A stretch of DNA of 39,990 nucleotides from Octopus bimaculoides. Its lineage: Eukaryota. The stretch spans positions 18,167,457 to 18,207,446 of the forward strand of contig NC_069002.1 of NCBI RefSeq assembly GCF_001194135.2. Reading direction: 5' to 3'. The translations under genes were made by a program, and so were the position numbers. Positions 8,597-39,258 of this stretch are shown here, piece by piece (the stretch's first letter is position 1; each line of letters opens with the position of its first letter). Under the pieces are notes generated by a model. It did no database searches. It was not told the DNA's origin and saw only the letters and a list, made by a program, of their open reading frames with translations.

Positions 8597-8802
8597 TCAC
8601 ATTATATTCGAGGGTAGACATTCAAGTGCTTCAAAGCACTCAGCTTCCTCCAGAGCTTTCCTCAATACTTCAAATGTACGATGTTCTGGACGACAACCCA
8701 TGAACCATTTGTGCAGCGTTTGGAAGCTCTGATTCAAACTGTTAAAAGGATTGTCCTGCATGATATTTTCCAGGTCAACTTGTTTAACTCCTAATTCCCT
8801 TC
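8597..8802 (-). CDS. Exon 11 (terminal): rest of death domain, TGA stop at 8597-8599
   Basis: Acceptor aatcttttgcag|GA. (G)[67 protein letters not shown]; has the death-domain L..W and T...L..AL pattern. Confidence 0.85.
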
Positions 8803-10288: not shown

Positions 10289-10325
<37 letters not shown>

Positions 10326-12249
10326 CTGTTGATTTTACCCCAGTATAGGAGTGGTACACTTTGCAGCAATCCTAAAGTATAACAAGCTGACTATGTCAAA
10401 GATGATATCTTCTCTTAATTTAGATAAATCACTTCTATCAGCTGACTGAGAAGATATTGCCATGACCTCTTACGTCAGCGATCAGAAGTTCAAATCTGGT
10501 CTCCAGCAGTGACCAATGTCCCTAGTAAAGATGTCTTACTATGGGGCAGACCAACTAGATATCAATAGGTAGAATAGGGAGGTACAAGATATTATTGTAA
10601 GTAAAGGGGACATCGTATAAAAGATATTTTTTATGTTGTTACATACTGAGACAAGTGCAAATTGGATATTGTGATGTTCATGCCTTTCCAAGTGGTATTT
10701 GTAATATAAAGAAGAGTAAAATGATTTCCATTGACAAACAAAAAAATCAAGTTTACATCTATCAGGATAATTATTTTATAATTTATGATTGTTTCATTAA
10801 CTTACAGAGCTGAATTCAATCCACCCAAGGGCACAATCGACAATGGGGCCTGTCTTATTTAAATAAAGGAATATAGGTTGAACTGGGGCCAAAGAACTAC
10901 AATAAATAGAAGGAACAGATTGGAGAGGGAAGAGACAGACAGCATCATGTCCCTGAAAATAAACCCTACTGTCTTAAAGTGGATATATTTGATAATGTAA
11001 TCCTGTGCCCCCAAAGAAAACACAGTAATGTCAGATGAGGGACACTTTTCTTCCAAATCAAGGCAAATATCTTCTTAAACAACAACAACAACAGCAATAC
11101 CCAGTCAGTAAACTTTGTAAGTATGCAAAACAAACAAAAAGATTGCCATTAACTCATCTTTGTATCACAACGCAACAAATTCCAGTTCCCTCTTCCAAAT
11201 GACAATGTTAACTTTAGTTTCTCTCTAAATTTATCCATTTTACCAAACATGATGATCTTTAAAAGAATTACTTTACAACAAACATTTCATTCGAAAATTA
11301 GGAATGGAACCTGTTCTCAGTCAATTTGATAATCTAAAGTTCAGGTAAAGGTAAAATTTATAAAAATCAATTAGATATTTTATACTCACCAACTTGCTGC
11401 CATTTATTTCCTAACCTTTTTGCCACATTATTGAGATGGTTCACCGTCAGCTCTGGACTCTCTGAAATAAATATTTAAAAGTTTTACAAATAATAGTAAA
11501 ATATCTTTATCTCTACTAATAATTTTAGTATTGTGAGACATCAATGGTCAGCTGGTGACCACCATGGCTTTGCTCAATATTTGTATACTATCCACAGTGT
11601 TACCATATAACAGGACAATATTCATCCTCAGTATTTAAATCCTATATCCTAACTGAACACTCTCTATGGAACAGCAACACCTCCTGGGGCACTCTTCACT
11701 CTTACATTCGTTACAAACATATATATTGGTTCTGTGCTACTTTCAAATTGATCCATGGGTTGGGGTGTTTGATATCGCTTTGGGTCACTGTAGGTCTCTT
11801 GTATTTGCTTGTCCAGTTCATCTTCAGTGCATGTTAGCCTGCTACTCTTAGCATTTGCAAACAACTTCCTAGTAACCTCATAAGGGTTCTTAAGGACCTG
11901 ATCTGATCTGATTAGTCTCCTTTCTTCTTTCAACATGTCTGATATTTCTTTGCATAAGTTAGAGAGGAACATTTAATCATGTTGGGGATGTTACAATCAT
12001 TCTAGTGCTTCCGGCATAATAAAATGTACCTAGGGCCCTTTATAAAGTGGTTGGTGTTTGGAAGGGTATACCACCATATAAAATTTGGAATGCTTAAATG
12101 AGATGTGTTTCTCAAGCAATCAATGTGAGCAGTAATTCTAAATAAGAACTGACTTGGACAGTGACCACCCATCAAAGAATGGAAAGCAGATGATAAATAA
12201 TGAAACGATGTCATTGATTGTATTATATCTTTCAGCCAGTGTCTATATT

Positions 12250-12347
<98 letters not shown>

Positions 12348-15300
12348 TAACCATTGTTTCAGCAGCGAACCAAAATATTCAACTTGGATAAAGACAGTCC
12401 CTGATGGATGTCCTTCTGCAACATCTTTGCACTAAATAAACATCTCCAAGTTTTACAATTTATACAAAAATGTATTTATCTTTATTAATAATCTGTATTT
12501 TATTATTGTGACACATTCCTATCATCAATGCACACTTGGTGAACACTGTGGCTTTGGACAGCATTTTTATACTTTCTATAGCGGTACCATGTAATGAATG
12601 GTTCAATATTTACATCAACAACAGACTAAACTAACCTTCCTATATCTCCTTTCACCATTAAGATAACCTTCATATTCTAATCTAATAATTCTGCAATTAT
12701 CTCAATTAATTATCACTTGAAGCTGTCCCTCACTTGAAGCTGGTTTTGTTTTGTTTTTCTTATATATGTTGCAAATCTATGACATGGCATTGTCGCCACT
12801 CCTGTAGACTTCACTAATTAACATTATTCTCATCTTCCATTTACTTCCAATGTCAAACATGCTGGTCTCCAAAGTTCTAGCCACAAGCGCATATCATAAT
12901 CCTTCAAGTAGGATAAACATACACCCGTTCTCTTTCTTAAACGTTGCTGCTTGTAATCTTCAATTCTAATTGCCCAGATCACGGTTCGTCAGACTGTCTA
13001 ATGATTGAGGAAATATTTGAAGATATTTCAAAGTCATTCCGTTTCCTTAATGAAGCAATTTTCTTTCCAGGTGTGCAATGTTTACATCTATGCAGGTGGA
13101 GCAGAAAGTTATATCAAGTATCCTAAAATATTGTACCTTCACACAAAACCTCATTAATTACATATAATTGTTATTTCATACATTATTGCAGTGAAATACC
13201 TAAAATTGTACATACTGATACTCATGACCACTATTCTATGCATCAAACAATGTCTCCACTTTCAATGTGATGGACCTCAAATGTGTGAAAATTCAATTAC
13301 CAACAAATTTGAGGACACAAAAGATATGCATTCACAGAAGGGTTTAACTCACAGAAACTGTCTTTCTGATGTCATTCTTAATATAAGAACAACCTTACAA
13401 GGAATACGCATCCCAATTAACATCACTAATACTCTGCCTCATTTTTCATAAATGCTAATTGAGACAAACTAATTAAAAAATGTCACTATCATGCTAAATA
13501 AAGTATATCTAATTAGTGTCGCATAAACATAGAGAAAGGTTTCACAACAGTTCGTTTCCTATGGAATGAAGTCAGGATCAATAATATCCGTATATCCAGG
13601 CAGTGAGCTGGCAGAAACATTAGCACACAGGGCGAAATGCTTAGCGGTATTTCGTACGCCGTTACGTTCTGAGTTCAAATTCTGCCGAGGTCGGCTAATT
13701 AAGTACCAGTTACACACTGGGGTCGATGTAATCGACTTAATCCTTTTGTCTGTCCTTGTTTGTCCCCTCTGTGTTTAGCCCCTTGTGGGCAATAAAGAAA
13801 TAACAATAATATCTGTATATTACTGGGCTACAGAGATCGATAATCCAAGTTTGTAGGGATGTGGTCCTGTACCCAAGAAAAAAAACAGGGGATAAGTAGA
13901 AGGTAACAAGTATTAAAGTATTAGGTGAAAGTTGAAGAGGATACTGTGACAAAATGAGATTACATTTCAGATATACACACATAACCTTTCCTCGTAAGGC
14001 TCCCAGATTACAACAGAAATCTAGTTAAATAATAACGACAATAAGTGATCAGTAATCACACTCGCCAACGACATCAAAACATGCTCGAGGACCTATGGAG
14101 TATACAAAGTAGTCTCCACTAAATGTAGGGCATCGCATGTAGGGAGCACTACTAGGAAACAACACATCTGAATAAAGGAGAGTAGTCACACGGTACACTT
14201 CAATGGAGGACCACCTTAGTACCAAACTCAAAATTTTAAAGTTTCCATCGAGGAAAATGAACGCAACAGGAGAAATCTCAGAATTATGGAAGAAATTGAG
14301 ACCAGCCATGAACAACATGAAGGAACTTCACAAAACCTCCTTCCTTCTCCCTCACCTTCACACACATACACACTTCTGAGCAACAACCTTTTCCAACTAC
14401 GACTTTCTCCAAATGTCCTGAAGAAGGGATCTTCAACCCGAAATGTAGAAACACAAAGTAAAACTGCAAATTTGTTCTCTTTATTTTTCCTTGTATTTTA
14501 TAGTTTACTTTGTACCTTCTCATATTGTCCTGGTCTTACACAACAAACAGTTTTACTGTTATAACTCACAATGCTTTACCAAAACCACGTCAAAAATGCA
14601 AAACAAACAAAAGCTTTGTCATTAACTCTTATGTTTACTCCTAACCAATAATATATTTTAGTTTCCTGTGGCAATATCAACTCTATTGCATATTCTAATT
14701 TATCCATATCACAAACTAGGCAAACCTCTCTGGATATTTTATGATATTCCAATAATATCTCAGATAGGATTATTATACAGCTAACATTTCAAATGGAAAT
14801 TAGGAATGGAACCTGTTCTTAGTCATTTTGGCAAACAATATCACTCAGCAGAAGGTAAAACTTAGAGAAATCAGTTAAGCACTTTAATTTATACTCACCA
14901 ACTTTCTGTGATGAACTGGATGTGCTGGGTGTACCAGATGTACTGTGTGTACCAAATGTACTGTGTGTACCAGATGTACTGGGTACACCCGATGTGCTGG
15001 GTGTACTGGGTACATCCGATGTGCTTGGTGTACTGGGTACATCTGATGTGCTGGGTGTACTGGGTGTAGGCTGTAACACTTTCCGGATCTTCTTCATAAA
15101 GTATGAAGTCACTAAAATAGATAATAAAATGTTATAGTTTGCTTGAAGCATTGTATACGATGTGTAACGTTAAAAGAGATGCAAGGCTAAACAATGCAAA
15201 ATGAAGTGTAAGATGAGGTAACGAAAATTAAAAGTAAGTTACCTGGTAATCTTTGTTTTGTTTTGTTTTATTGTTGTTGTTGTTCTTTTATCTGCCCAAT

Positions 15301-18300
15301 ATTTCGGGTCCTAAAAGTCCCTTCATCAAGGCTTAAGGAACTTTCATTGGATAATGTTCCAATTTCCTGTCTTTGGGATAAGATTTTGAATTTGATTAAA
15401 TTTTTACTTAAGTCGTTTTCAATCATTTTTCATGGTTAATTAGCTTTCCACGTGAATGATATCAATTGCTTTTATAGTATTTTGCAAAATTCTATATTAG
15501 CTTGAAAACAACTTCAGAAAAAAAATTTAATCAAAATCAAAAAGAGAGGAAAGTGGAACCAACGAAAGCTCCTTAAGCCCTGATGAAGGGATTTTTAGGA
15601 CCTGAAATATTGGTCAGATAAAAGAACAACAGCAACCACAATAAAAAAAAAATCAAAGTTTATTTTTATGCCACAACTATCTAAGTAATAGGTAATGCTT
15701 ATAACATTATTGAGTACAATAATACTTGGACATATTCTATTATTGGACATATTCCATATACTTGGGCATATTCCATATACTTGGACATATTCTATTGTAT
15801 ACCATCAACTTCCGGGCCACTCTTTAAACTTGCTTTCGTTACGCAGCTATATACTTGTTTCTTGCTGGTATTTGATTCCTGGTTTGTTGAGTATTTCAAA
15901 CAATCCATGAGTAGGAATGGTTAATCTCATAGCTCTCCTGTATCAGCCCATCTAGTTGATCTTGAGTGCATTTTAGCCATCCATTCTTAGCATCTGCAAA
16001 CAGCTTCTTAGTAAGCACATAAGAGTTTTTAAAAAGATACTCTCAAACCATTTGCTATCTTTTCTTTCAATAAGTCTGATATATCTTTGCATAAGTTAGA
16101 GAGGAAGGGTTAATCTTCTTGTGGAGATGACAATCTTTCTAGTTCATGTGCCACAATAAAATGTACTTGGAACCCTTTATAATGCGGTTGGTGTTAGGAA
16201 GGACATACCACCATAGAAAAGTTAGAATGTTTAAGTGAGATGTGCTCCTCAAACATTCAATGTTGGCAGCAACTCTAAAAAAGAACAGGCTTGGACAGTG
16301 AACACCCGTCCAGTCCATGAAAGCACGGAAATCAAATGACAAGTAATGAGGGTGATATCATTTACTGTGATATCATTTACTGTACTGCATGGTGCAACCA
16401 GTATATATCTGGAAGAGACAGGGAGAGGGAAAGACCAAGAGAGAAAGAGATAGGCAGAGGCAGATTGAGAGAGGGGAGAAAGAGAGAGAAAGAGAGAGAC
16501 CAATTGTTTTTTTTTTCAGTAGCAAACTAGTCTTCTACTTGGTTAAAGACCATGTTTAGTGGATGTAGCGATAGATTTGCTATCATGGAAAATGACAGGC
16601 TGTTCGCATTTGGATCACTTTATATCATAAGACTGCCAGATTATGACAGACACCTGGTTAATCAACAAGAAAGATTATTTATCAGTAATCAATAGGTTAG
16701 CAAAAACAGAAAACAAACAAAAAAGTTGTCCTTAACTCAGTTGTTTACCCACTAAACTAGACTATATTTTAGTTGCTTTAACGATAGACAATATTAAATT
16801 TATTACATGTTTTAGTTTATTACTAACTATTCTAACCTCACGTGATATTGTACATTTCGATAATATCTTTAATAGCATTACTAAATGACTAAACTTTCAA
16901 ATGGAAATTAGAAATGGAGCTTGTTCGCAGTCATTTTGACAAACAATTTAGTTTGTCTGAAGGTAAAACTTAAATGAGATTAATTAGTTACTGCTGTTTT
17001 ATACTCACTCTGACGTAGCGTGGATGTCCTGCGTGTAGGCTGTGACACATCAACTGGCTCTGCCACCGTCTGGACTTCCTTGTCTAACAAATTTGGTCCA
17101 GCTGAAATAAATATTTTCAAGTTTTATTAATTATATTAAAATATATTTTATTATTGTGAGACATTCCTATCATTAATGTTCAACTAGTGACCACCATGGT
17201 TTAGGACAGCATTTTCATACTTTCTAAAATGGTACCATTCAATGGCTCAATATTTAGGCCCACAACAGAATAGTCTAAAATTTCTAAATGTTTTCTTACA
17301 TCTCTTCCTACAATCTTTTTCCAACAAAATCTCACAATGCTGCAATTATGCTTCAAACTTTTGTATTGAGTACTACAGTATATAACCTATTGTGAGACAG
17401 TCTGGGTACATACCCCAGTAAGAGATGACATCTCATATCAAGCAGCAGACTACTGTAACTATTTGAGATCTTCATAATATGATAAATCATAAGGAATTTC
17501 GTTAAAAGATGTTGGAACTTTGTAAAGATGTTGGAACTATCCATACAAGCTTTCATCAATTACCAATATTCACAGCCACACACGACTTTTAATAGTCAGA
17601 CTCTTTAAAGTTGGTCCTTAAACTCACAGTTGATATTTTCTGATTGAATCACCTACTTCATCAAACCTAACACTGATGTACTTGTAAGTAGTATTGTCTT
17701 TAATTATCAACTTCCGAGACACTGATAAATCATTAATCATTTCTAATCACTCACAATTGACTATCAAAAAAGATGGTGTGTACTGAAAGGACATTGGATT
17801 ATTTATAGATATTTCAGATAGTCAGCATTTATCTTTCAGTATCCTTCCTTAAAAAGGTACTGTCTATAAGACAGTACCTTTTTAAAGACAAAGTTTAGTT
17901 GATGCGGTGATACACATCACAGAGAAACAACACTTGAAACCACATTTAACATACGTCTGAGAGATTATGATAGACCTGGGTCTACATAACAACATGAAGT
18001 ACATTATTCCATACCAATGAGACAAACAGACATATCATCATTAAAGAGTATTCTTACCAAATCTATTTTTGCATATAACAATTTGCCGACACACGAGGCA
18101 TCGTTTAGGTGAATTCTTTGGACAGCATTCTCTGCATAACACAATATGCTCACAAGGTTCAAATATCACCAGGGCCTCATTAGTTTCACACCATCGACAT
18201 CTGTAGAACGAAATATAAACACATCTCAACAATAACATTCGTTTATAACAAATATTACATTGTGTACATGTTTACAGAAAAGATTATTATGAGTGACCAG

Positions 18301-21300
18301 AGTGAGATGCGTGGCTTAGTGGTTAGTGTGTTGGAGTCATGATTGTAAGATTGTGGTTTCGATTCCTGGACCAGGAGATATGTTGGGTTCTTTAGCAAAA
18401 CACTTCGTTTTTTATTTGCCCTCCATACAAACCTGTCTCTTGTTATAACTGAGCCCCGGTTCATTAAGAAAACCACTGAATCTGCCACATATGATGTAAT
18501 GGGTGTATCTGAAGAAATCATTTATCTGCAAGATTTTTCTTATAACTTGTCCACTTCAAATGTGTTTCTCCTAAAAAAATATTCTCTGCCTCAGTTGATA
18601 GTTTCGAAACCCAAACCAGTTTGATTCACCTTCTACTGAGGTCAGCGCATACCGTTTAGCCCCTGTTAAAGACGGGTATGATAAACTGTTTATTTAGCTC
18701 GTCCTCGTTTACCACCCGATAACACCTGAAGTTACATATTGTTGCTCACACCATATAGAATAGGGATGCAAACTGGTCTAAGAATATTGAACCAACAATG
18801 GACAACAATAGAAAAGCTACAGGCAAGTACATAAGAACAATACGTTGTACTCTATAAATTATGACAGGCTTAACTAATTTTCAAATAGAAAGGAAATTTA
18901 AATCGATTAAAATCAATTGAGATTATCGAAAATAAATTCTATTCAAAAATATAGCTAATCGTCAGATCGTAAGTAGAACAATAATTAGATATATATATAT
19001 CTGTCTCAACCAACAATAAGTACCAAATGAATTAATATGAAATACTTATTATATAAAGATAGAAAAATTATTAAAAATATCATAATATCAAAATAATAAC
19101 CATTCAATAATCATCCCTTCATCCATTATAATAACATGTATATTATATACAAAAACATCTTACATAAATCATCATTGTTTTAAATTATCATTGTTTTAAA
19201 TACAANNNNNNNNNNNNNNNNNNNNNNNNNNNNNNNNNNNNNNNNNNNNNNNNNNNNNNNNNNNNNNNNNNNNNNNNNNNNNNNNNNNNNNNNNNNNNNN
19301 NNNNNNNNNNNNNNNNNNNNNNNNNNNNNNNNNNNNNNNNNNNNNNNNNNNNNNNNNNNNNNNNNNNNNNNNNNNNNNNNNNNNNNNNNNNNNNNNNNNN
19401 NNNNNNNNNNNNNNNNNNNNNNNNNNNNNNNNNNNNNNNNNNNNNNNNNNNNNNNNNNNNNNNNNNNNNNNNNNNNNNNNNNNNNNNNNNNNNNNNNNNN
19501 NNNNNNNNNNNNNNNNNNNNNNNNNNNNNNNNNNNNNNNNNNNNNNNNNNNNNNNNNNNNNNNNNNNNNNNNNNNNNNNNNNNNNNNNNNNNNNNNNNNN
19601 NNNNNNNNNNNNNNNNNNNNNNNNNNNNNNNNNNNNNNNNNNNNNNNNNNNNNNNNNNNNNNNNNNNNNNNNNNNNNNNNNNNNNNNNNNNNNNNNNATA
19701 TATATATATATATACACATGTATATATATAGATGTATATGTATACGTGTATATGTAAAGCTGTATATGTATAGATGTATAAGAGAGCGAGCAAAGCTACA
19801 GGAAAGCAAAAGATGAATGATCACAATAAGCAGTCAGCTACCCTACCCAAGTCGTTACTACTCCCAGATGTAGGATTCCTCGCCACACAGGTGACAGGCA
19901 CAGCTGTAAGATGCATTATGGATCTATAGGAATTGGAAGAGTGTGACCCAACTGAAACATTAACAACTGGAAGTGTCACCTCTGGAAGTGTCACCTCTGG
20001 AAGTGTCACCTCTGGAGTTTGAAAATGACCACTATACCGAAAGGTAACTGGACAGAAAAAATTTATAATCTATAAATGTCTTTCAATAGCCAGTCACTCA
20101 TCTGGGAAGGCCTTGAAATCAATGTTACCATAGGGGGACTATGTGTGACCCAGTGATAATAAGAAGACTCAAAGGGAGTCTGAAACCAAATAACTTTACT
20201 CAACACTTTGCAACTGAATCAGTGGAGGCAAAGATGCCTCTCATTTACATGATAATTTATGCGCCACATTGCAGAAATCACAATCTAAGTATATCTCAAA
20301 GCAAACTGTTACACTGTTGTACCATTGAATTACAAATAACGTTAATCATTTATGTTCAGGTAACCCTATAGCTTCCAAGAGTACATCTGTATTCGTCTAT
20401 GCTTAGATAAAATGACTAAATTGTGGGTGTTAAGTCCCCATGAAGGGGTCTTTCTAACTTCTAAGAAGATGAAATTTTAGAAATATTACTTTTAGAAGCA
20501 TTGAGATGTCTTAGAAAGTTAAAGAAGTGATTTTAAATTTTCAAACGCAGGATAATGCTAATAATATAGCCTGAACAGGATAAGCTACCCCTATTTTGCA
20601 GAAAAAAGTGTAGGCGGCCAGCTATGAGTGTGTTTGTAGAATATTTTCTTATGAAACCTTTCATAATAATGACTGTTTGGAACAGAGAAGAGAAAAACAT
20701 GTCAGTTTACAGATAAAGCCAACTTTCTTTTAGTACCAACTTCAAAATGTGTTTATTCACTGCATTATTTAGTACTACATTTTCCCGGAGGTTACAAACC
20801 TTTAAAATAGGGAACTACAAGAAATAGGCGGGGTTGAACAGTGTCAACACAACCAATCATGTGAATGTAATCAAAGTAGTGTTCTTTCTTTGATTACATA
20901 ACAGCTACATATTGTCTATTGTTCTTCTTACTATTGTTGTGTGGTCTTTGGTCAAGACACTAGTGAGAGTATAATGTATTGGTAGAATTAAAACTGAACA
21001 AATAAACATGATTATGCAAAAAATAGAAAATGTACTGGTTTATCTTGTCATTGTCAAGGAATACTTACAGTAGTGATGGGAATAATTTCTTTAATTTTTC
21101 TTTCAAATTTTCATTCTTAACTAGGTCCAGTGGAGACACACCGTTTTTGTTTTTATGATAAAAGTCACCCCCGTGTTGGGCCAGATAACTGGCAACCACT
21201 GCGCCGCTGCACCTGCATCCTTGTCTCAATTTCAGCTTAGTGCAGTACTACAAATGATGAAATATAAAATGATAAGTGCAATATAACACAAATATACATT

Positions 21301-21744: not shown

Positions 21745-21794
<50 letters not shown>

Positions 21795-24700: not shown

Positions 24701-27700
24701 AGCTGCACAAAACCGAATTTCACGGGAGGGCTGCAATCAGAAAACTACTACTTTCAAAAACAAACGTTGCAAAGCGTTTAGAGTGGAGTAAAAACCTACA
24801 GAATCAGTCCCGAGAACAGTGGAAGAATGTTATTTCTTGGACGAATCGTCCTTTACCTTATTTCTGAATACCGGCCGAGTATACGTGTGGGGACAGCCAA
24901 GAAAAGCATTTGACTCAGACTGCCTTTTTCCACGTGTTAAACATGTAGGAGGATCTGTGATGATCTGGGAGGAAGGGCTATATCTTGGAAATCTGCTGGC
25001 TCAATGGTTTGTCTTCATGGCAGAATTAATAGTCAAGACTATTCAAGTATTTTATCTGATGGTCCTACCCAATATTAAAATAAATTTGTTTGAAATTTTA
25101 AGGTGTTTCCATTATTTTGTCCAATCCCTGTATATACACACTTGAGTCAGCTCAACAATGTATATGTGGTACAACTGTTATATAGAAATGAAATTTAGGA
25201 TAGAGGAGAAGATGTAGAGGTGATTATATTGACTCCAGCACATGACTGGTATCGTATTTTATCTGTCTTTCCAGAAGGAAAGGCCAAATTGACCTCGGTA
25301 GTATCTGAACTCGGAATGTAAAGGGTCGTAAATAAATACCACAAGATATTTTGTCCAACACTAACAAATACCCAAGAACAAGAGAGGTTGAGAGTTTCTT
25401 AAATGAACCAGTGGATATTACTGGTACAGATTATATCAGCTACAGAGTGACATTAGTTACTCTGACACGATTTAAACACTGTAAGGGATGATTCTGTATT
25501 TAACCCTAGGTCAGAGGAAAGAGATACATTACGAGTGACGGGGGTGAAAAGGGGTGAAAGTAAGAAGACAGACGATCTGAACCAGTAACAGTAAGGGAGG
25601 ATTAGATGAAGTGAAGAAAAATCTAGTCATGTGATAACAACAACAATAATTATGGTGATGATTAATTGATGAGGTAGATTACAGTGTCATTACAGTGTGA
25701 AAGAGAGTTGAAAGACGATGGCCCATGGTGGGATATGAATGACTCAATAAAATAAACAGATTTTGATATTCCTGATGAATGTGGTCTTACCATTGAACTG
25801 CTATATGTAGAGGTGTGTTACTATTATTGTCAACCGCATTGGCATCAATGCCATCTTGTTGTAGTAGAAGTTCAACAGTATATGTGTGTCCATTCAGACA
25901 GGCCTGATGCAGAGGTGTCCAACCATCTTTGTCCACCACACTGACATTAATGTTAGTGTGTTGTAGTAGATGTTCAGCGGTCTCCATGTGTCCATACAGA
26001 CAGAGCAGATGTAGAGATGTGCAACCATTTCTGGCCACGGCATTGACATTAATGCCAGTCTGTTGTATTAGAAGTTTAACAGTGTCTGTGTGGCCATGCC
26101 TACAAGCCAGGTGTAAAGGTGTCCAGCCATCTTTGGCCACCACACTAATATCAGTGTGCTTATGTTGTAGTAGACACTTAACAATGTCTGTATGTCCATT
26201 CAGACACGACAGATGTAAAGGTGTGCAACCATTTCTGGTCACAGCATTAGCATCAATGCCAGTCTGTTGTAGTAGAAAATTAACAGTGTCTGTGTGTCCA
26301 TATCGACAGGAGAGATGTAGACATGTCTCATAAACATTGTCCACTTCACTGACATTAGTGCCAGTGTCTTGTAGTAGAAGTTCAACAATGTCTGTGTGTC
26401 CATTCATACAGGACAGATGTAGAGGTGTCCAACCCTCTCCGGCAACCATACTGACATCAGAGCCAGTTCGTTCTAGTAAAAGTTTAACAGTGTCTGCGTG
26501 CCCAGCCTGACAGGCCAGGTGTAAAGGTGTGTAGTGATCATTGGTCATCACATTGGCATTAATGCCAGATTTTTCTAGTAGAAGTTTAACCGTTTCAATG
26601 TGTCCATTCATACAGGCCAGATGTAAAAGTGTGTTACCATTATAGTCTACTACAGTGACGTCAGTGTCAGTTTCTTCTAGTAGAAGTTTAACTGTGTCTG
26701 TGTGACCATTCAGACAGGTCAGATGTACAGGTGTGTCGCCATCATAGTCCACCACATCGACATCAGTGCCATTCTGTTGTAGTAAAAGTTTAACAATGTC
26801 TGTGTGTCCATTCAGACAGGCAAGATGTAGAGGTGTGCAACCATCTTTGGTCACCGCCGTGACATCAGCGCCATTCTGTTGTAGCAGAAGTTCAGCAGTG
26901 TCTGTGTGTCCATTTAAACAGGTTAGATGTAGAGGTGTGTTACCATTATTATCTACAACCATGACATCAGTACCATTCTGCTGCAGCAGAAGTTTAACAG
27001 TGTCTGTGTGTCCATTATAAGAGGCCCGATGTAAAGGTGTCCAGCCATGATTATCCACTACCATGACATCAGTGCCAGTCTGTTGTAGCAGAAGTTTAAC
27101 AGTGTCTGTGTGTCCATTCCGATAGGCCAGATGTAAAGGTGTCCAGCCATCATTGTCCACCACCGTGACATCAGTGCCAGTCTGTTGTAGCAGAAGTCTG
27201 ACACTGTCTGTGTGACCATTCAGACAGGCCATATGTAGAGGTGTCTGACAATCATTGTTCACCACCTTGACATCAGTGCCATTCTGTTGTAGCAGAAGTT
27301 TAACAGTATCTGTGTGTCCATCTTGACAAGCCAGATGTAGAGGTGTGTCGCCATCATTGTCCACTACACTGACATCAGTGCCATTCTGTTGTAGCAGAAG
27401 TTTAACAGTATCTGTGTGTCCATCTTGACTAGCCAGATGTAGAGGTGTGTCGCCATCATTGTCCACTACCCTGACATCAGTGCCAGTCTGTTGTAGGAGA
27501 AGTTTGACACTGTCTGAGTGTCCATTCAAACAGGCTAGATGTAGAGGTGTCCAATCGTATTTGTCCACCGCAGTGACATCAGTTCCAGTTTGCTGTAGTA
27601 AAAGTTTAACAATGTCTGTATGTCCATTGAGACAAGCAAGATGTAGAGATGTGTCACCATCATTGTCTACCACGTTGACATCAGTGCCAGTCTGGTGTAG

Positions 27701-28145
27701 TAGAAGGTTAACAGTGACTGTGTGTCCATCTTGAGAGGCCAGATGTAAAGGTGTGTTACCATCATTGTCCACAGCACTAACATCAGTGTCATTCTGTTGT
27801 AGTAGAAGTTTAACAGTGTCTGTGTGTCCACGTAGACAGGGAAGATGTAGGGGTGTCCAACCATCATTATTTCGTTGATTGACCTGAAAATATAAGCAAT
27901 AAATACTTTAAAGATGGTGTGTACTAGATGGTGTGGGGTACAAGAATTGTAAAAAAATCTCAGAAAGTGAAAGGAAAGAATCAAACTAATAAACAGCTGG
28001 AATGAATGTGGGGAAGAACAAATAAATGAGGTTTGTATATATACACTCACTTACACACGCACACACACACACACACACACATTTATATACCCTCTCACAT
28101 GCAAATATACGCATCCACACGCACAGACACACACACATATATACA

Positions 28146-28212
<67 letters not shown>

Positions 28213-29073
28213 GTACGGCTAGCTGGCAGAAACGTTAGCACGCCGGGCGAAATGCTTAGCGGTATTTCGTCTGCCGCTACGTTCTGAGTTCAAATTCTGC
28301 CGAGGTCGACTTTGCCTTTCATCCTTTCGGGGTCGATTAAATAAGTACCAGTTACGCACTGGGGTCGGTATAATCGACTTAATCCGTTTGTCTGTCCTTG
28401 TTTGTCCCCTCTGTGTGTACATACATAAATACACATATATATACATATGTACAGAAATATACCTACGCTTTATGTTTTCACAAGTCATTTATGTTTATGT
28501 ATTTTTTGTGTGTGTGTGCATTTATGTGCATTTATGTGCATTTATGTGCATCTATGTGCATTTATGTGCATTTATGTGCATTTATGTGCATTTATGTGCA
28601 TTTATGTATGTATATTCGAGTATGTAAGTATATGTATGTATATGCTTATGAGCCTATATGCATATTTATGCATGTATATGTAGGTCTGTATGAGAAATGA
28701 AGAAAAAAAAACAATTTAAAGAAATATAAATTCATTATGGAAACTAAAATTTTTCAATTTTGTGAGACCAATTCCGAAAGATCTTCCAGATATCTATGAA
28801 CTTCTTCTGAAATCCACTCTTTTCAATGTTGTAGCAAATAATTATGTCTATATTGTGGGAAAGAAAGTCGAAAAGTGTGTGTAGCGAGGTATCGATCTAA
28901 AATTCAGCAAAGATATTTATTTTGTTACCAAAATCATCAAATGCACACAAGGAAATGAGCAACTTTTTATAAAAACATATGAATCGTCAGAAAGTCATCA
29001 GTAAACAAAGTTTGGGCACACTGTATGTACATATCACATACGTACAACACACACACACAGATAGATAGATAGT

Positions 29074-29127
<54 letters not shown>

Positions 29128-30493
29128 NNNNNNNNNNNNNNNNNNNNNNNNNNNNNNNNNNNNNNNNNNNNNNNNNNNNNNNNNNNNNNNNNNNNNNNNN
29201 NNNNNNNNNNNNNNNNNNNNNNNNNNNNNNNNNNNNNNNNNNNNNNNNNNNNNNNNNNNNNNNNNNNNNNNNNNNNNNNNNNNNNNNNNNNNNNNNNNNN
29301 NNNNNNNNNNNNNNNNNNNNNNNNNNNNNNNNNNNNNNNNNNNNNNNNNNNNNNNNNNNNNNNNNNNNNNNNNNNNNNNNNNNNNNNNNNNNNNNNNNNN
29401 NNNNNNNNNNNNNNNNNNNNNNNNNNNNNNNNNNNNNNNNNNNNNNNNNNNNNNNNNNNNNNNNNNNNNNNNNNNNNNNNNNNNNNNNNNNNNNNNNNNN
29501 NNNNNNNNNNNNNNNNNNNNNNNNNNNNNNNNNNNNNNNNNNNNNNNNNNNNNNNNNNNNNNNNNNNNNNNNNNNNNNNNNNNNNNNNNNNNNNNNNNNN
29601 NNNNNNNNNNNNNNNNNNNNNNNNNNNNNNNNNNNNNNNNNNNNNNNNNNNNNNNNNNNNNNNNNNNNNNNNNNNNNNNNNNNNNNNNNNNNNNNNNNNN
29701 NNNNNNNNNNNNNNNNNNNNNNNNNNNNNNNNNNNNNNNNNNNNNNNNNNNNNNNNNNNNNNNNNNNNNNNNNNNNNNNNNNNNNNNNNNNNNNNNNNNN
29801 NNNNNNNNNNNNNNNNNNNNNNNNNNNNNNNNNNNNNNNNNNNNNNNNNNNNNNNNNNNNNNNNNNNNNNNNNNNNNNNNNNNNNNNNNNNNNNNNNNNN
29901 NNNNNNNNNNNNNNNNNNNNNNNNNNNNNNNNNNNNNNNNNNNNNNNNNNNNNNNNNNNNNNNNNNNNNNNNNNNNNNNNNNNNNNNNNNNNNNNNNNNN
30001 NNNNNNNNNNNNNNNNNNNNNNNNNNNNNNNNNNNNNNNNNNNNNNNNNNNNNNNNNNNNNNNNNNNNNNNNNNNNNNNNNNNNNNNNNNNNTTTCTAGA
30101 AGTTGTCCATAGGTTCCGGCCCGAAAGTCGTCTTGAACAGGCGGGTCAGGTATTCCTCGTCAACGCCCAGGTTCACCCTCCACAAATCCCCTATAGAATG
30201 CTTTGGTTGTGTTGCAGTCACTCAATGTCGACCCGGGACGGCATAGTTGCTGGAGAGCAACGCGACACTCGCAGTGCCATTCGCTCTTTCTCGGCCTCTT
30301 TTTGATCCACGACTGCAGTTCGGTCATGGAGACGAGTTGCGGGAAAGCGCCCCTCACAAACGGCAACCACACCTGTTCACCATCGTCTATGTAGAGCCGG
30401 AGATGTCTAGATGTCTAGATAGATAGATAGACAGACAGACAGGCAGGCAGACAGACAGACAGATACATAGATAAATAGATAGATAGATAGATA

Positions 30494-30563
<70 letters not shown>

Positions 30564-33500: not shown

Positions 33501-35179
33501 GTATTTAAGATGTTGTTCATTTTCGGGTTTTGAGTGAGCAGAGGGAGATTTTGTATGATTGTGTTGTATGCTTCATTGTTTCTGGGGTTGTGGGTTGATA
33601 TGCATGGGAGTGATTTAAAGTGAGGTATTGTGTTTTGTTTTGTTGTCCTTGTTCTATAAGTGCGGGTGGGTATTGACGCTCAATGAGTGCTATTTTGAGT
33701 TCTTGTTCCCGAGTGGTTATGTCAGATACAATTGTACAGATTCTTTTTGCTAGATTGAATGGGATATTTTTTTGGGTGTGTTTAGGATGGCATGAACTGA
33801 AAAGGAGATACTGTTTTGAGTCTGTTGGTTTGTAGTAAATGTCGGTTGCAATTTGGTTGTTGCACTTTTTTAAAATCAAAATGTCCAGAAATGGGAGCTG
33901 TTCCTTGCTATATTCCATTGGGATTTATATTATTCAGTGTGGATTTGAAATCCAGGAGTTTATCATAGGTTTCATTCCAGATGGTAAAACAATCGTCTAG
34001 GTACCTTTTCTAGTTTTCTCTTATATACTGGTGGAATGGGGGTCCGAATTTTTGGAGTGAAAGTTCATATAGGATAGATTCAAAGAAACCCATTATTAGG
34101 TTCGCAAGTACAGGCGCTGCTTTCATTCCCATCGCAATACCGCATTTTTGGCAGTAGTCTATTGTATCGAATAGGAAGTAATTGTTTTGTAGGATGAACT
34201 TCAGGGATTCAATGACAAAAGTCTGGTTTATGCGGTCCGGGAGAACTTCGGGGTATTTTTCTAATCAGAATTTTATTGCCTCTATTCCGTAGTCATGTGG
34301 AATGTTAGTGAAGAGGTTGATAGCATCAAAGGAGACTAATAGAGCTTCTTGTCCAGATCGTCTCTCATGAAACTTTTAATGTATCTGAGGAAAGGTTTCA
34401 ATAGAATGTGCAGAAAGTTGCTTAGGCGGTGTGTTTCACAGGCTGGGCCCACTGTAATAGGCCTTAATTTTAAGTCTATTAGTCTCCTTCGATGTCATCA
34501 ATCTCCACACTAACATTCCACCGGTTGGATTTTACGACATCCATATAATATGTATATATTTATAAAAAAGATATTAAACTATGTGAAACGAATACATTTC
34601 TCTTTCACTTTTTATGTTTTCCATATATTTTCAAACTACACACACACACACACGTATATATATATATATATATACTCACTAACCTGTAAAATGTTATTTC
34701 CTTTACTACTCAACAGGACTTCGACTACTTCTTTACAGTTCTCCTCTACAGCAAGATGGAGAGGGTTGTTGCTTGATGAGTCCTGCTTGTTAACATTCGC
34801 TCCACTGGAAACCAGGGATTTCGCAGCATCATGTTTATGGCTGAAAGTAAAAAATGTAAATATTACAGAAATCCACGTAATAATTATATTAAATGTACAT
34901 TCATATTCAATACATAATAACTAAATGCACAAAAATGTATGTATATTATACCGGGTATATATATTTATATATTTGATCCTTTATATTGAACACTCAATAT
35001 TTCATCTACATTCAATACTTTCTTTCATGGTGCCATCCATTTTTATTTTATTTTATTTTATATTATATATTGTGTATTATATTATATATTATATATTCCA
35101 TATTCTATACCCCACATTGGTTCTGCAGGAATATAAATAAAACAAAAAAAACAGACAGTGTTGGAACTCTTTTAAACAA

Positions 35180-35221
<42 letters not shown>

Positions 35222-38200: not shown

Positions 38201-39258
38201 TCAATTTGCTATGATTCTTTATTTTTATTTTGGTAACTCTTATTCTGTGAATATTCTTTGATGACAGAATTTTCTGACAGTTTCTTTATTTGAAACGTTG
38301 TCTTCTGATGAAATGGTGAAAATTTGTCACCAAAACAATTGTAAAGAATAAAATTTTGAATAAATATTTCTGTCTCTTATAATATGATATGGATTTATAT
38401 TCTATGGATGTTGATATCATGGAACATATCTATCTTTAAAGCTGCATTTCTGTGAATATAAGAGATCATATTGAGTTCTAATGAAACCATTACATGTTAT
38501 GTTAATTGATACTTTTATATTAAATCATATCTATGTGAGCATGAAATGCAATGAAACTCTGTCTAAGGAAACTAAAAAAACAACAAGGACTTCAAAAAAT
38601 GTTTTATAGCACAGAGGTGGCCTGATGAGCACAGTTCAGGTCAAGATACATTTAAGAGTGTGTTGGCTATGTTGCAGATGGTGGAGAGATATAATCTTTG
38701 GGAGAAAGTTTACAGATTATTATTGACATAACATCCAAAACTTTGTTTTCATTTTGCTGCTCAAATATAAGTTTCTTTCCAAACAATTGATTGATCTCTC
38801 CATAATCAATATCAACAGACGACTCTGATTCACATTGGATCAATCGTAAGGGTGACCGTTGGCTCTCAAAGAATATCCCCAAAACAAAAATGTTTTGAAA
38901 ACAGATAATCAAAAATGTTCTTATGGTTCAATAATGAAGTTGATTTTTGGAGAAAATGAGAAAAAGATGTTGTTGGTTACCAATATTATGTTGTCATCCT
39001 CTCACACCGACACTCCTGTGGCATCTTTGGATATTTAACCTGTCTAGAAATGGAAAAAATTTGGAAACGAAACAGATCTGAAGATTTTAGTTAATTCTGA
39101 ACTTACTTCTTCACAGCCTAATGTAATGCTGTTAGACCATCTTTGTCAGTCACGTTCAAATTAGATCCTGCTTCTATCAACATGTTTATCATATCTGTGC
39201 TACTATGTATACAAGCAGCCATTAAGTATGTTTTACCTGTTGAGTTTGTTTGGTTCAC
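8597..39258 (-). CDS. Multi-exon Mind bomb (MIB1/MIB2)-related ankyrin-repeat / RING E3 ligase / death-domain gene; 11 exons in window, 5' end outside window, one in-frame TAG at 39118-39120
   Basis: All 10 introns are GT-AG with matching phases (2,0,2,0,0,2,1,1,1,1). Exon lengths 152+157+2093+37+210+179+143+93+213+72+206=3555 nt. The pre-RING segment [29 protein letters not shown] resembles the Mind bomb motif ..[25 protein letters not shown] (from memory). Domain order is ANK-RING-STP linker-death domain. Confidence 0.88.
9700..10325 (+). mobile_element. Degenerate RTE-clade LINE 3' end with (GAT)n tail
   Basis: [13 protein letters not shown] and ..[14 protein letters not shown] remnants, ending in (GAT)n at about 10289-10324. 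Confidence 0.65.
11390..11461 (-). CDS. Exon 10: N-terminal helices of death domain, phase 1-1
   Basis: Acceptor aatatttatttcag|AG, donor G|gtgagt. (E)[23 protein letters not shown](G) joins exon 11 to give the typical death-domain pattern L..VA..LG..W..VGRELGV. Confidence 0.85.
11660..12240 (-). mobile_element. Old remnant of HERO/NeSL-like RLE non-LTR retrotransposon (pre-RT region), copy 1
   Basis: [37 protein letters not shown]...VKSAPG parallels [29 protein letters not shown]...NASAPG of the element at 30783-32460. Confidence 0.65.
13598..13803 (+). mobile_element. tRNA-derived octopus SINE, internally deleted
   Basis: gagctggcagaaac.ttagca...ttctgagttcaaattctgccgaggtcg...gtgggcaataaagaaataa; paralogous to 28216-28415 and 30561-30782. 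Confidence 0.85.
14000..14340 (+). mobile_element. Penelope-like GIY-YIG endonuclease remnant
   Basis: [24 protein letters not shown] and NFKV..E.N...LRIMEEI resemble the GIY-YIG domain of Penelope-like elements; degenerate. Confidence 0.5.
14899..15111 (-). CDS. Exon 9: Ser/Thr/Pro-rich tandem-repeat linker, phase 1-1
   Basis: Acceptor ttattatctattttag|TG, donor G|gtgagt. [70 protein letters not shown]; 213 nt, open. Confidence 0.75.
15251..15658. repeat. About 400-bp foldback element (arms about 15251-15422 and 15503-15658)
   Basis: Left ttgttcttttatctgcccaatatttcgggtcctaaaagtcccttcatcaaggcttaagg versus reverse complement of right ttgttcttttatctgaccaatatttcaggtcctaaaaatcccttcatcagggcttaagg; a second matching block tttgattaaattttt..ttttcaa. 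Confidence 0.85.
15900..16330 (-). mobile_element. Same HERO/NeSL-like remnant, copy 2 (part of segmental duplication)
   Basis: Colinear with about 11800-12190, e.g. atatctttgcataagttagagagga and gggtataccaccat / ggacataccaccat. Confidence 0.65.
17009..17101 (-). CDS. Exon 8: linker exon, phase 1-1
   Basis: Acceptor aatatttatttcag|CT, donor A|gtgagt. (A)[30 protein letters not shown]; 93 nt, open. Confidence 0.75.
18058..18200 (-). CDS. Exon 7: C3HC4 RING finger (MIB/IAP type)
   Basis: Acceptor tttcgttctacag|A, donor G|gtaaga. [47 protein letters not shown] has all 8 Zn ligands; phase 2 to 1. Confidence 0.92.
18305..18430 (+). mobile_element. tRNA-derived SINE head
   Basis: A-box tggcttagtgg (18312-18322), B-box gtttcgattcc (18356-18366), followed by ..gttctttagcaaaacactt. 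Confidence 0.7.
19967..20016. repeat. 15-bp tandem repeat (CTGGAAGTGTCACCT)x3.3
   Basis: Three perfect units plus ctgga. Confidence 0.9.
21069..21247 (-). CDS. Exon 6 (last ankyrin-like unit, Mind bomb-type pre-RING segment)
   Basis: Acceptor catcatttgtag|TAC, donor CT|gtaagt. [59 protein letters not shown]; too short for the ORF track. Confidence 0.88.
22141..22467 (-). mobile_element. Two tandem 5'-truncated SINE copies delimited by three copies of a 16-bp direct repeat
   Basis: aactgtctgaaatatt at 22141-22156, 22284-22300 (one extra a) and 22452-22467; both bodies contain gatgaaaggcaaagt.gac.t.gg.ggaatttgaactcagaa. Confidence 0.85.
23468..23677 (-). CDS. Exon 5 (ankyrin repeats)
   Basis: Acceptor ttttatctccaaaaag|GAT, donor AAG|gtaagt. 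[70 protein letters not shown]; 210 nt. Confidence 0.88.
23969..24005 (-). CDS. Exon 4: 37-nt microexon completing ankyrin repeat 21
   Basis: Long polypyrimidine tract ttttctcctttaataacttacag|G, donor CAG|gttagt. Gives (W)[12 protein letters not shown] and supplies exactly the phase 2 to 0 bridge needed between exons 3 and 5. Confidence 0.85.
24198..25130 (+). mobile_element. Tc1 DNA transposon, internally deleted (933 bp), both TIRs and TA TSDs
   Basis: TIRs caggggttggacaaaataatgggaacacc / cagggattggacaaaataatggaaacacc (27/29 identical); TA at 24196-24197 and 25131-25132. Transposase [14 protein letters not shown].. (24391-) is frameshifted near DES and lacks the C-terminal catalytic part. 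Confidence 0.93.
25220..25370 (-). mobile_element. Degenerate SINE fragment
   Basis: aaggaaaggccaaattgacctcggtagtatctgaactcggaatgtaaag resembles the SINE core at 22250-22283. Confidence 0.55.
25791..27883 (-). CDS. Exon 3: 2093-nt single-exon array of 20 complete 34-aa ankyrin repeats plus the start of a 21st
   Basis: The supplied ORF 25787..27772 starts at a GTG (Val); the frame stays open to the acceptor tatattttcag|GTC at 27883. Donor TG|gtaaga at 25790. Consensus [34 protein letters not shown] with 102-bp period. Confidence 0.95.
28216..28415 (+). mobile_element. tRNA-derived octopus SINE
   Basis: gctggcagaaacgttagcacgccgggcgaaatgcttagcggtatttcg...gagttcaaattctgccgaggtcgactttgcctttcatcctttcggggtcg. 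Confidence 0.9.
28517..28606. repeat. 10-bp minisatellite (TGCATTTATG)x9
   Basis: Read directly; one unit carries a t-to-c variant. Confidence 0.9.
30093..30400 (-). mobile_element. LINE ORF2 C-terminal fragment, tentatively L1/Tx1-like
   Basis: GC-rich coding-like [53 protein letters not shown] running into the gap; clade is from recollection only. Confidence 0.45.
30561..30782 (+). mobile_element. tRNA-derived octopus SINE
   Basis: ggcgagctggcagaaacgttagc...gagttcaaattccaccgaggtcgg...gtgggcaataaaga; abuts the 3' end of the RLE element tail-to-tail. Confidence 0.88.
30783..32460 (-). mobile_element. RLE-type non-LTR retrotransposon (HERO/NeSL/R2-like) with most of the RT deleted
   Basis: N-terminal zinc finger [23 protein letters not shown]; pre-RT SAPG.NGIPY and [10 protein letters not shown] joined near 31232 to the RLE domain [39 protein letters not shown]; stop at 30789. 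Confidence 0.88.
32709..34634 (-). mobile_element. 5'-truncated Penelope-like element with inverted terminal repeats
   Basis: RT remnants ([50 protein letters not shown]) and GIY-YIG ([10 protein letters not shown]); inverted arms 32709-32824 and 34520-34634. Confidence 0.88.
34684..34840 (-). CDS. Exon 2 (ankyrin repeats)
   Basis: Acceptor ttttttactttcag|C, donor CAG|gttagt. Translates (N)[52 protein letters not shown]; phase 2 to 0. Confidence 0.87.
35540..36260 (+). mobile_element. R4/Dong-like RLE LINE 3' fragment
   Basis: [20 protein letters not shown] zinc knuckle and [42 protein letters not shown]. Confidence 0.8.
36270..36390 (-). mobile_element. Degenerate SINE fragment
   Basis: aggcacaaggcctgtaattttgagggg..aacctcagcaagatttgaactc. 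Confidence 0.5.
36765..37420. repeat. Degenerate (CATA)n/(CATG)n/(CA)n compound microsatellite
   Basis: Read directly; source of the MHTY/MYVC ORFs. Confidence 0.95.
37660..38120 (-). mobile_element. Degenerate RTE-clade LINE 3' end
   Basis: [29 protein letters not shown] and [20 protein letters not shown] remnants. Confidence 0.7.
39107..39258 (-). CDS. Exon 1 in window (ankyrin repeats) with in-frame TAG
   Basis: Acceptor cactttccttgtttcag|GTG, donor AA|gtaagt. Translates [49 protein letters not shown]; phase 0 to 2. Confidence 0.82.

Follow-up and report, generated by a model that had tools for sequence, protein, structure and literature searches.

We analysed a 39,990-nucleotide stretch of the Octopus bimaculoides genome (RefSeq assembly GCF_001194135.2, contig NC_069002.1, positions 18,167,457 to 18,207,446 of the forward strand), hereafter called the window, and found on its minus strand a gene of 11 exons that runs from position 39258 to 8597 with canonical AG/GT splice sites and phases that chain without a break. 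The spliced in-window product of 1184 residues, joined across 20 splice sites, combines a long ankyrin array, a pre-RING segment and a RING finger with a C-terminal death domain. We consider it fairly probable, at roughly 0.6, that the window holds a nearly complete, unannotated member of a multigene family of ankyrin-RING-death-domain proteins that is restricted to Octopus, that these proteins are cytoplasmic, and that the family derives from a gene like Mind bomb 2 (MIB2) whose terminal RING was replaced. The sequences of the family are public as automatic predictions under misleading NCBI names ("MIB2-like", "MIB1-like", "ankyrin-1", "secG-like", RIPK1), and our search of the literature found no paper that describes the family or its architecture.

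Gene model

Stop-to-stop frames on the minus strand contain ankyrin, RING and death-like pieces in descending order. The gene model was obtained by listing all AG/GT sites, aligning paralogous proteins by tblastn and reading the junctions. Proteins and loci used for comparison are given below by P and L numbers. The exons are as follows.

39107..39258, minus strand: exon A, second of the coding exons; holds ankyrin repeat 1 and the beginning of repeat 2; entered in phase 0 and left in phase 2; Pfam Ank; 58-60% identity (tblastn) to paralogues P0017 and P0002 over their residues 28-80
34684..34840, minus strand: exon B; ankyrin repeats 2-3, ending ...SSKGNNILQ; matches paralogue residues 79-134
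25791..27883, minus strand: exon C; 20 tandem 34-aa ankyrin repeats and the start of the next; 2093 nt, fully open; Pfam Ank_2, 851 bits
23969..24005, minus strand: exon c2; 37 nt, completes an ankyrin repeat; AG/GT sites; phases 2 to 0; 64% identical to P0017 residues 287-300 (tblastn)
23468..23677, minus strand: exon D; ankyrin repeat(s) and a conserved FHSEVE...LD segment; Pfam Ank; splice sites present; 57-66% identical to paralogues (tblastn)
21069..21247, minus strand: exon E (pre-RING); degenerate last ankyrin repeat and the helix leading into the RING
18058..18200, minus strand: exon F (RING); C3HC4 RING finger of the MIB RING1/2 (IAP-like) class; tail ...KNRF
17009..17101, minus strand: exon L1 (linker); phase 1-1; AG/GT splice sites; 48% identical to the P0002 linker GPKLSDKAVQTVAEP... 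(tblastn)
14899..15111, minus strand: exon STP; linker rich in serine, threonine and proline (STP), open, phase 1-1, AG/GT sites; Tandem Repeats Finder (TRF) arrays at 14919-15065
11390..11461, minus strand: exon H; death domain part 1; phase 1-1; 60% identical to P0002
8597..8802, minus strand: exon I; remainder of the death domain and the stop codon; Pfam Death

The frame leaves the RING exon in phase 1, passes through L1, STP and H, which are all phase 1-1, and continues into exon I. At the other end, the N-terminal 103 residues of the window protein are 64% identical to P0028. A first coding exon, which encodes ~28 aa in the paralogues, was not found in the 730 upstream bases left in the window.

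An earlier reading made from the letters of the window (the sequence-only reading) had placed the end points 39258 and 8597 and the 11461/8802 junctions exactly where splice sites and phases put them. The exons that it named all stand, although it had overlooked those at 24005-23969 and 17101-17009. Similarly, the extent that it gave for the gene is right for the exon coordinates in the window but leaves out the first coding exon, which lies beyond it.

Domains of the predicted protein

Pfam recognises 25 ankyrin stretches (PF00023) in the spliced model, and degenerate repeats where exons D and E meet bring the number to ~26-27, in agreement with the ~26 repeats counted earlier. Pfam ankyrin matches are likewise obtained with the separate pieces at 39.2 kb, 34.8 kb and 23.6 kb and with the 2.1-kb open frame 25790-27907. 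Among the paralogues the number of ankyrin repeats ranges from a few up to 20 in-exon units as in the window.

For the C-terminal domains we built block hidden Markov models (HMMs) of the pre-RING, RING and death regions from paralogues, leaving the window out. The pre-RING exon (21247-21069) scores 100.7 bits against its block. The same block matches genuine MIB proteins that carry SH3_15 domains at 41-46 bits, directly upstream of their first RING; its targets include the O. bimaculoides MIB2 P0325, O. sinensis P0288, the three-RING MIB1-type protein P0302 and insect mib1. Together these matches uphold the assignment of exon E as a Mind bomb-type pre-RING. Furthermore, a family profile matches the crystal structure of the MIB1 ANK region (8v0e, E 1.4e-8), and the helix of exon E aligns with the pre-RING helix of cIAP1.

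In the RING exon all eight C3HC4 zinc ligands are present (CRWC...CEH...CRECC...CLVC) and align with those of the cIAP1 and MIB RINGs. The exon alone scores 31.2 bits with zf-C3HC4_3 (cut-off 27) and 46.7 bits against the family RING block, in line with the single C3HC4 RING recognised earlier. The hydrophobic residue between C1 and C2 is retained, as is the aromatic tail (...KNRF).

The death domain had been proposed on the exons that begin at 11461 and 8802, and it passes the Pfam Death threshold (PF00531, cut-off 22.6) with 35.4 bits on the joined exons H and I and 30.4 bits in the whole protein; against the family block it scores 117.8 bits. By sequence the family death-domain profile is closest to the RIPK1 death domain of human and mouse (E 2e-10, and 9e-6 for the window), followed by those of ankyrin-3 and PIDD. 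The death domain of the window is also 48% identical to that of O. bimaculoides P0269, a 300-aa protein with a death domain only that NCBI names RIPK1. The layout of P0269, with its sole death domain at the C-terminus, recalls that of Drosophila IMD.

An AlphaFold2 model was examined for the C-terminus of paralogue P0001, to whose C-terminal region the window is ~50% identical. It contains a helical death domain at a predicted local distance difference test score (pLDDT) of ~90, a disordered linker and a moderately confident RING. Foldseek superposes the modelled death domain on those of ankyrin-G, RAIDD, TRADD, RIPK1 and FADD with template-modelling (TM) scores of 0.7-0.85, and the modelled RING on those of cIAP, XIAP and IDOL. 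A six-helix death fold is thus predicted for this paralogue.

Death domains of the same type occur in other Octopus genes. The O. bimaculoides gene LOC106882527 (P0255/P0340/P0341) encodes a leucine-rich repeat (LRR) adhesion G-protein-coupled receptor (GPCR; domains LRR_8, GPS, 7tm_2) that ends in a family-type death domain, with 96.7 bits on the family Death block and 27.6-28.8 bits with Pfam Death. This suggests that exon shuffling has carried the two death-domain exons to a membrane receptor in at least one case. One O. bimaculoides adhesion GPCR with a Death domain is mentioned, without comment, by Ritschard et al. 2019 (PMC6408891). Small Octopus genes with this domain type as their only domain encode P0269/P0355, P0227, P0241, P0242 and P0247, which are automatically named RIPK1, PIDD1-like or uncharacterised. 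Two death-domain-only genes are neighbours at locus L004 (10001-18265 and 25354-28265) on O. bimaculoides CM046626.1.

A family found in Octopus

A search with the C-terminal third of the window protein returned only Octopus proteins with Ank, zf-C3HC4_3 and Death, at identities of <=57%. With a profile that spans the pre-RING to the death domain, a word-indexed search gave 88 clusters, all of them belonging to O. sinensis, O. bimaculoides or O. vulgaris. When 1.84 billion representatives were searched exhaustively with HMMER and a profile built without the window, 52 matches were obtained at E<1e-30. Sources were checked for 30 of the proteins by name and for 2 by the encoding contig, and every strong family-type match whose source was checked was from Octopus. 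Matches outside Octopus were weak; they were genuine Mind bomb proteins or, in amphioxus and echinoderms, proteins with several death domains. The full-length query found no protein from the window locus and no close orthologue above ~50% identity in the cluster collection, and its matches were dominated by generic ankyrin proteins.

As counted with the block HMMs, 84 clusters have both the family RING and the death domain (65 distinct death domains), 29 have pre-RING and RING without a death domain, and 26 have the death domain only. Two family members lie ~100 kb apart on O. bimaculoides CM046629.1. A lineage-expanded cephalopod family had been suspected in the sequence-only reading; the 84 clusters bear out the expansion, while "cephalopod" is too broad for a family found in the genus Octopus only. 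Nor is the architecture that of a single conserved metazoan orthologue, the strong matches that were checked being all from Octopus.

RefSeq models of dozens of paralogues from three species put the RING and death domain together in a single open reading frame (ORF) with equal exon order. That order (ankyrin exons, the FHSE-LD segment, pre-RING, RING, phase-1 linkers, two-exon death domain) is also the order met in the window, which is collinear with L001 of O. bimaculoides and L002 of O. sinensis at 74-81% DNA identity, introns included. One predicted O. vulgaris protein, P0182 (278 aa), combines a remnant of the family RING with LRR repeats and two incomplete death domains of the family type. 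It may be a genuine copy that was rearranged, or a gene model that has fused neighbouring members into a chimera.

Probable origin from a MIB2-like gene

When the RINGs are aligned they fall into two classes, the internal MIB RING1/2 class with cIAP-like spacing and a terminal class with the motif CP[IV]C[ML]D...F.CGH. The window RING belongs to the first class and has a two-residue insertion between C6 and C7 that it shares with RING1 of the Octopus MIB2-like genes. A tblastn search with RING2 of paralogue P0017 found no terminal-type RING exon in the window. P0017, P0232 and P0237, in turn, keep a terminal-class MIB-type RING and have no death domain. These two observations suggest that the terminal RING was replaced in the death-domain members.

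Sequence comparison thus supports the view that the family arose out of a Mind bomb-2-like gene of Octopus, of which it keeps the C-terminal half with ankyrin repeats, pre-RING and RING1. The Mind bomb derivation put forward earlier is strengthened by the true MIB proteins found with the pre-RING block, the RING1/2 class, the shared insertion and the paralogues that retain RING1 and RING2. In the course of this origin linker cassettes and a death domain like that of RIPK1 or IMD would have taken the place of the terminal RING.

The Pfam scan of the window model found no MIB/HERC2, ZZ or SH3_15 domain, the first exon being outside the window. In the full-length paralogues P0028, P0017 and P0002 a leader of ~28 aa is followed directly by ankyrin repeats, and Pfam finds only Ank, RING and Death, whereas the genuine Octopus MIB proteins P0325 and P0288 carry SH3_15. 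A Mind bomb orthologue was ruled out because both the substrate-binding modules (MIB/HERC2-ZZ-MIB/HERC2 and SH3_15, or REP) and the terminal RING are lacking.

Linker exons

The STP linker exon (15111-14899) had been picked out from the letters, and we find it open, phase 1-1 and flanked by AG and GT. Exons L1, STP and H lie within tandemly duplicated intron/exon units (11264-12625, 14591-16307 and 16701-17269), and all three end in a common phase-1 donor, N|gtgagtataaa. The 3' end of the STP exon is homologous to that of death exon 1, the introns that follow the two exons are homologous as well, and the interior of STP is an 18/27-bp minisatellite (TRF).

The linker of O. sinensis P0037 consists of three 51-nt cassettes and an additional exon, ESLNLEENRFHSTSKKVAVKQQQV, that is itself death exon 1 in a duplicated and diverged form. 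The window STP exon is the positional homologue of this annotated cassette exon. The 51-nt cassettes of O. sinensis are spaced ~166 bp apart (L002 23302-24353 and 28078-28152), and many linker isoforms are annotated for O. sinensis LOC115225502. Since all linker exons are phase 1-1, each can be included or skipped freely. STP is probably a cassette exon, and its optional inclusion is plausible. The duplicated phase 1-1 units look like a built-in system for producing linkers of variable length by alternative splicing.

Alternative explanations

Several observations weigh against the reading given at the outset, and we set them out here together with the explanations on which they bear. One is an in-frame TAG at 39120-39118 (minus strand) in exon A, where the window has ALH*AV for ALHYAV and which would cut the protein short at ~75 residues. 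The codon is Tyr in all aligned paralogues (tblastn) and reads TAT in the paralogous loci L001 of O. bimaculoides and L002 of O. sinensis. The sequence-only reading had overlooked this codon. The TAG is the sole defect among the 1184 in-window codons and 20 splice sites. It follows that the copy became a null allele or pseudogene only very recently, or else that the TAG is a sequencing error.

Taken to its full extent, the first of these possibilities is that the copy is a pseudogene or null allele with an early stop and that its 20-repeat array is an unconstrained product of replication slippage. We regard this as a serious possibility, though not the likelier course. The TAG against TAT in two paralogous loci speaks for it, as do introns swollen by several transposon insertions and the birth-and-death turnover expected in families of this kind. 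Moreover, no protein of this locus is found in a collection of 5.8 billion clusters despite the inclusion of the O. bimaculoides, O. sinensis and O. vulgaris proteomes. It is opposed by the isolation of the lesion, which may be a single-base assembly error or a heterozygous allele, and by the state of the array itself. Two rescues of the stop are conceivable but speculative: a phase-compatible, in-frame cryptic donor at position 39182, or A-to-I editing that would turn UAG into UGG.

The array in exon C (25805-27868) has a period of 102 bp, with 20.2 copies, 77% matches and no indels (TRF). Its units 5 and 6 alone are recent copies, at 98% identity. The ankyrin framework residues T10, H13, G19, H20 and L27 are invariant across the 20 units. 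With a Nei-Gojobori estimate pooled over all repeat pairs, synonymous divergence (dS) is 0.42, and the ratio of nonsynonymous to synonymous divergence (dN/dS) is 0.61 for all positions and 0.47 for the framework. The repeats have thus diverged considerably and yet have kept an open frame and the ankyrin framework, which argues against unconstrained slippage. We take these codon comparisons as signs of an old array that purifying selection has kept as a folded solenoid. A single lesion in a gene whose array has maintained its frame and framework means that any decay would be very recent.

The six most variable positions across the units are 2, 6, 7, 9, 17 and 18 (in our own register), which coincide with the canonical target-binding positions known from ankyrin repeats and from the design of designed ankyrin repeat proteins (DARPins). 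At these positions dN/dS is 1.16, but repeat pairs are non-independent and a ratio of ~1.2 is no proof of positive selection. This pattern of variable positions is moreover generic for ankyrin repeats. For both reasons we draw no inference of diversifying selection.

Further points concern the RING. In the whole protein the zf-C3HC4_3 score is 25.2 bits, slightly below the cut-off of 27. The finger has CLVC where CP[IV]C is usual, and it does not conserve a hydrophobic residue at the E2-contact position ahead of C7. In human MIB1 an ANK-RING1-2 construct shows no autoubiquitination and only RING3 is active; Notch signalling does not require the ANK, RING1 and RING2 regions, and loss of RING1 together with RING2 leads to a slight rise in signalling (bioRxiv 10.1101/2024.03.01.582834). 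Because the RING kept in the window is of the class without ligase activity in human MIB1, E3 activity cannot be assumed for it, and by this analogy the predicted activity is doubtful.

A serious alternative, if on balance the less likely one, is that the family members are non-catalytic scaffolds, decoys or inhibitors in which the RING1-type finger is structural or autoinhibitory, and which bring ankyrin-bound partners to death-domain assemblies or cap such assemblies. This would agree with the membership of the window RING in the MIB RING1/2 class rather than the terminal catalytic class, with the inactivity of human MIB1 ANK-RING1-2 and the slight rise in signalling upon deletion of its first two RINGs, and with the fact that it is exactly the terminal RING that the death domain replaced. 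Paralogue P0014 has in addition lost part of its RING. It agrees less well with the retention of all eight zinc ligands in the window and in most paralogues, with the canonical CPICR motif of several paralogues, and with the 44% identity of the window RING to the active RING of cIAP1. Also kept are the pre-RING helix and the C-terminal aromatic tail (...RF), both of which are used by active dimeric IAP-type RINGs.

The architecture might also be an artefact of the gene model, the death-domain exons belonging to a separate, downstream small death-domain gene, and the 26 death-domain-only clusters of the same domain type in Octopus and the ~9.5 kb of intron between the RING exon and the last exon would be compatible with such an artefact. 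We consider it very improbable. The phases match from the RING through L1, STP and H to I, exon H has no start codon, and the dozens of RefSeq models from three species join RING and death domain in the matching exon order. In addition, the linkers and death exon 1 are tandem duplicates with a shared donor context, which points to one transcription unit.

Finally, the restriction to Octopus reflects the proteomes that are in the databases, from which other octopods and squids may be missing.

Relation to known systems

Among the known proteins closest to the predicted one are MIB1 and MIB2, in particular Octopus MIB2-like genes such as O. bimaculoides XP_014786080 (P0325). It shares with them the ankyrin region, the pre-RING and the zf-C3HC4_3 RING of the RING1/2 class and, with RING1 of the Octopus MIB2-like genes, the insertion. 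It differs from them in its short leader, the lack of substrate modules and of a terminal RING, and the added death domain. The window has ~26 ankyrin repeats and the family a variable number, compared with 10 in the MIB1 crystal structure.

RIPK1 and IMD-type adaptors resemble the family in death-domain sequence, and the predicted fold superposes on RIPK1, TRADD and FADD. Unlike RIPK1, the family has no kinase domain or RHIM, and its death domain is fused to ankyrin repeats and a RING.

The best solved structures for the RING and its helix are those of cIAP1/2, XIAP and MYLIP/IDOL (E 9e-9 to 1e-6). The spacing of zinc ligands is equal to that of the IAP RINGs apart from the 2-aa insertion, and an aromatic residue is present in the post-RING tail of both. 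The window protein differs in having no BIR, CARD or UBA, in the position of its RING, which is internal rather than at the extreme C-terminus, and in its CLVC in place of CPxC. Membership of the IAP family was ruled out, since the Pfam scan found no BIR and the likeness is confined to the RING and its flanking helix.

A single chain with ankyrin repeats and a C-terminal death domain is also found in ANK1-3, ANKDD1A/B, DAPK1 and NF-kB p100/p105, and the ankyrin-G death domain is the top structural match of the paralogue model. In contrast to these proteins the window protein has no ZU5-UPA, kinase or Rel-homology region and has a RING between the ankyrin repeats and the death domain. A canonical ankyrin (ANK1-3) was ruled out, the model having no ZU5-ZU5-UPA supramodule; ankyrin-1 proteins with PF00791/PF17809 appeared just as generic ankyrin-repeat matches.

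The combination of variable repeats with a death fold, in an expanded, clustered and lineage-specific family, is reminiscent of NLRs and of the expanded death-domain repertoires of amphioxus, echinoderms and bivalves. The repeats are however ankyrin rather than LRR, and the family has no NTPase switch. An NLR/STAND receptor was ruled out for want of a NACHT/NB-ARC NTPase. The sequence-only reading had likened the gene to an NLR-like receptor, and this is not supported by the Pfam scan, in which neither the model nor the paralogues have NACHT/NB-ARC or any other NLR hallmark; "NLR-like" is therefore an analogy only. Invertebrate genomes often contain death-domain architectures peculiar to one lineage, so that finding one here is less surprising.

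Proposed function

If the window gene is indeed a member of an Octopus ankyrin-RING-death-domain family, its death domain may dock the protein by homotypic interaction into death-domain oligomers, with RIPK1-like small death-domain proteins, FADD/CRADD-type adaptors or receptor tails as candidates for docking. The long ankyrin solenoid would be the part that binds a partner or substrate. Equipped with a pre-RING helix and an aromatic tail, the IAP-like RING might ubiquitinate components of the complex, or be regulatory if it is inert like MIB1 RING1/2. The net effect would be a tuning of death-domain signalling (NF-kB/IMD-like or cell death), and diversification of the paralogues could give differing specificities. 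In this copy the array would have grown to 20 in-exon repeats, with a conserved framework and with diversified positions on the canonical binding surface.

There is a precedent in mammals, where MIB2 binds and ubiquitinates RIPK1 and cFLIP in tumour necrosis factor (TNF) signalling (PMC5912950, PMC7815719). If the proposal is correct, Octopus would have hard-wired, in a lineage-specific manner, a link that mammals make between separate proteins (MIB2 and the cIAPs acting on RIPK1). The cIAPs likewise ubiquitinate RIPK1 in death-domain complexes.

It appears unlikely to us that the family serves neither immunity nor cell death but acts, for example, as a scaffold or ligase in neurons or in development. 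In that case membrane or cytoskeletal proteins would be the partners of the ankyrin repeats, and the death domain would be a generic oligomerisation module as in ankyrins or UNC5. The death domains of ankyrin-G and ankyrin-1 are indeed among the best structural matches of the paralogue model, and the same death-domain type is present on the tail of the O. bimaculoides LRR adhesion GPCR (PMC6408891). By sequence, though, the death domain is nearest to RIPK1 and only then to ankyrin-3 and PIDD, ZU5/UPA modules are absent, and the cIAP-like RING and the MIB2-RIPK1 precedent point to cell-death and NF-kB complexes. The octopus gene expansions that are well described are largely neural, which would speak for such a role.

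A more far-reaching proposal is that the family is a new class of cytoplasmic innate-immune or cell-death receptors, an NLR analogue invented within octopods. A rapidly diversifying ankyrin solenoid (2 to >20 repeats, with variable binding-surface positions) would sense pathogen or danger ligands and free the RIPK1/IMD-like death domain to nucleate signalling filaments, with the RING of Mind bomb descent as a ubiquitin switch. We regard this as quite improbable.

The family offers a natural experiment on the internal RINGs and ankyrin repeats of Mind bomb, which were kept while the module that binds the Notch ligand and the catalytic RING were discarded. Innate immunity and cell-death signalling of cephalopods are poorly charted, and the family comprises dozens of genes. 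Its size and the MIB-RIPK1 parallel make it worth following. At the level of the locus, the gain is a corrected gene model and the recognition of a premature stop codon.

Gaps, repeats and base composition

The window is AT-rich (37% GC) and contains four N gaps, many microsatellites and transposon fragments, a composition that fits a draft cephalopod assembly. Two of the gaps lie within introns of the gene.

29128..30092, no strand: assembly gap of 965 N in the intron between exons B and C; an (AG)n run adjoins
19206..19697, no strand: assembly gap of 492 N in the intron between exon E and the RING exon; a simple repeat adjoins

The B/C junction is phase 0 on both sides and the E/F junction phase 2 on both sides. 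P0017 aligns across both of these junctions with no residues missing (tblastn), and the homologous introns in an O. sinensis paralogue are ~1 kb and contain no additional exon. From the matching phases, the continuity of P0017 and the exon-free homologous introns we conclude that no coding sequence is hidden in the two gaps. The (AG)n run that adjoins the gap at 29128 was probably its cause.

The B/C intron measures 6.8 kb, compared with ~1 kb in the O. sinensis paralogue. Most of this length is accounted for by the 965-N gap and a run of ORFs of 84-136 aa at 30792-34375 (minus strand). By eye these ORFs are retroelement-like, with reverse-transcriptase-like and endonuclease-like motifs, and they gave no Pfam match at E<=0.01. 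In the intron between exons C and c2, a fragment of a Tc1/mariner-type transposase is found at 24391-25145 (plus strand). Its 158-aa ORF matches Pfam HTH_Tnp_Tc3_2 at 54 bits; the adjoining 108-aa ORF has no Pfam match. Eight transposon-like ORFs besides these two Tc1-like ones have no Pfam match, nor does a possible mariner-like remnant at 5794-6075 (minus strand).

A repeat of ~200 bp is present in four copies, at 13605-13800, 28217-28416 and 30565-30782 (plus strand) and at 22355-22452 (minus strand), which are 82-93% identical to one another. At other Octopus loci its identity reaches 95% (L001 36650-36867), and the repeat is probably an element like a short interspersed nuclear element (SINE), with no tRNA-like head detected by ARAGORN and nothing in Rfam; tRNA and Rfam scans of the whole window were also empty.

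Microsatellite runs lie at 36789-37422, 12252-12345, 28053-28205, 29075-29127 and 39298-39377. They include (TACA)n of ~160 units and several (AG)n and (AC)n runs, and they give rise to long spurious ORFs rich in Cys, Met, Tyr and His in the ORF list. The stretches 944-1341 and 34958-35196 are dispersed repeats common to every Octopus locus that was fetched, eight in number and none of them overlapping the window. The second of them is 97.5% identical to a stretch in O. bimaculoides L003, compared with ~85% for its best matches in O. sinensis.

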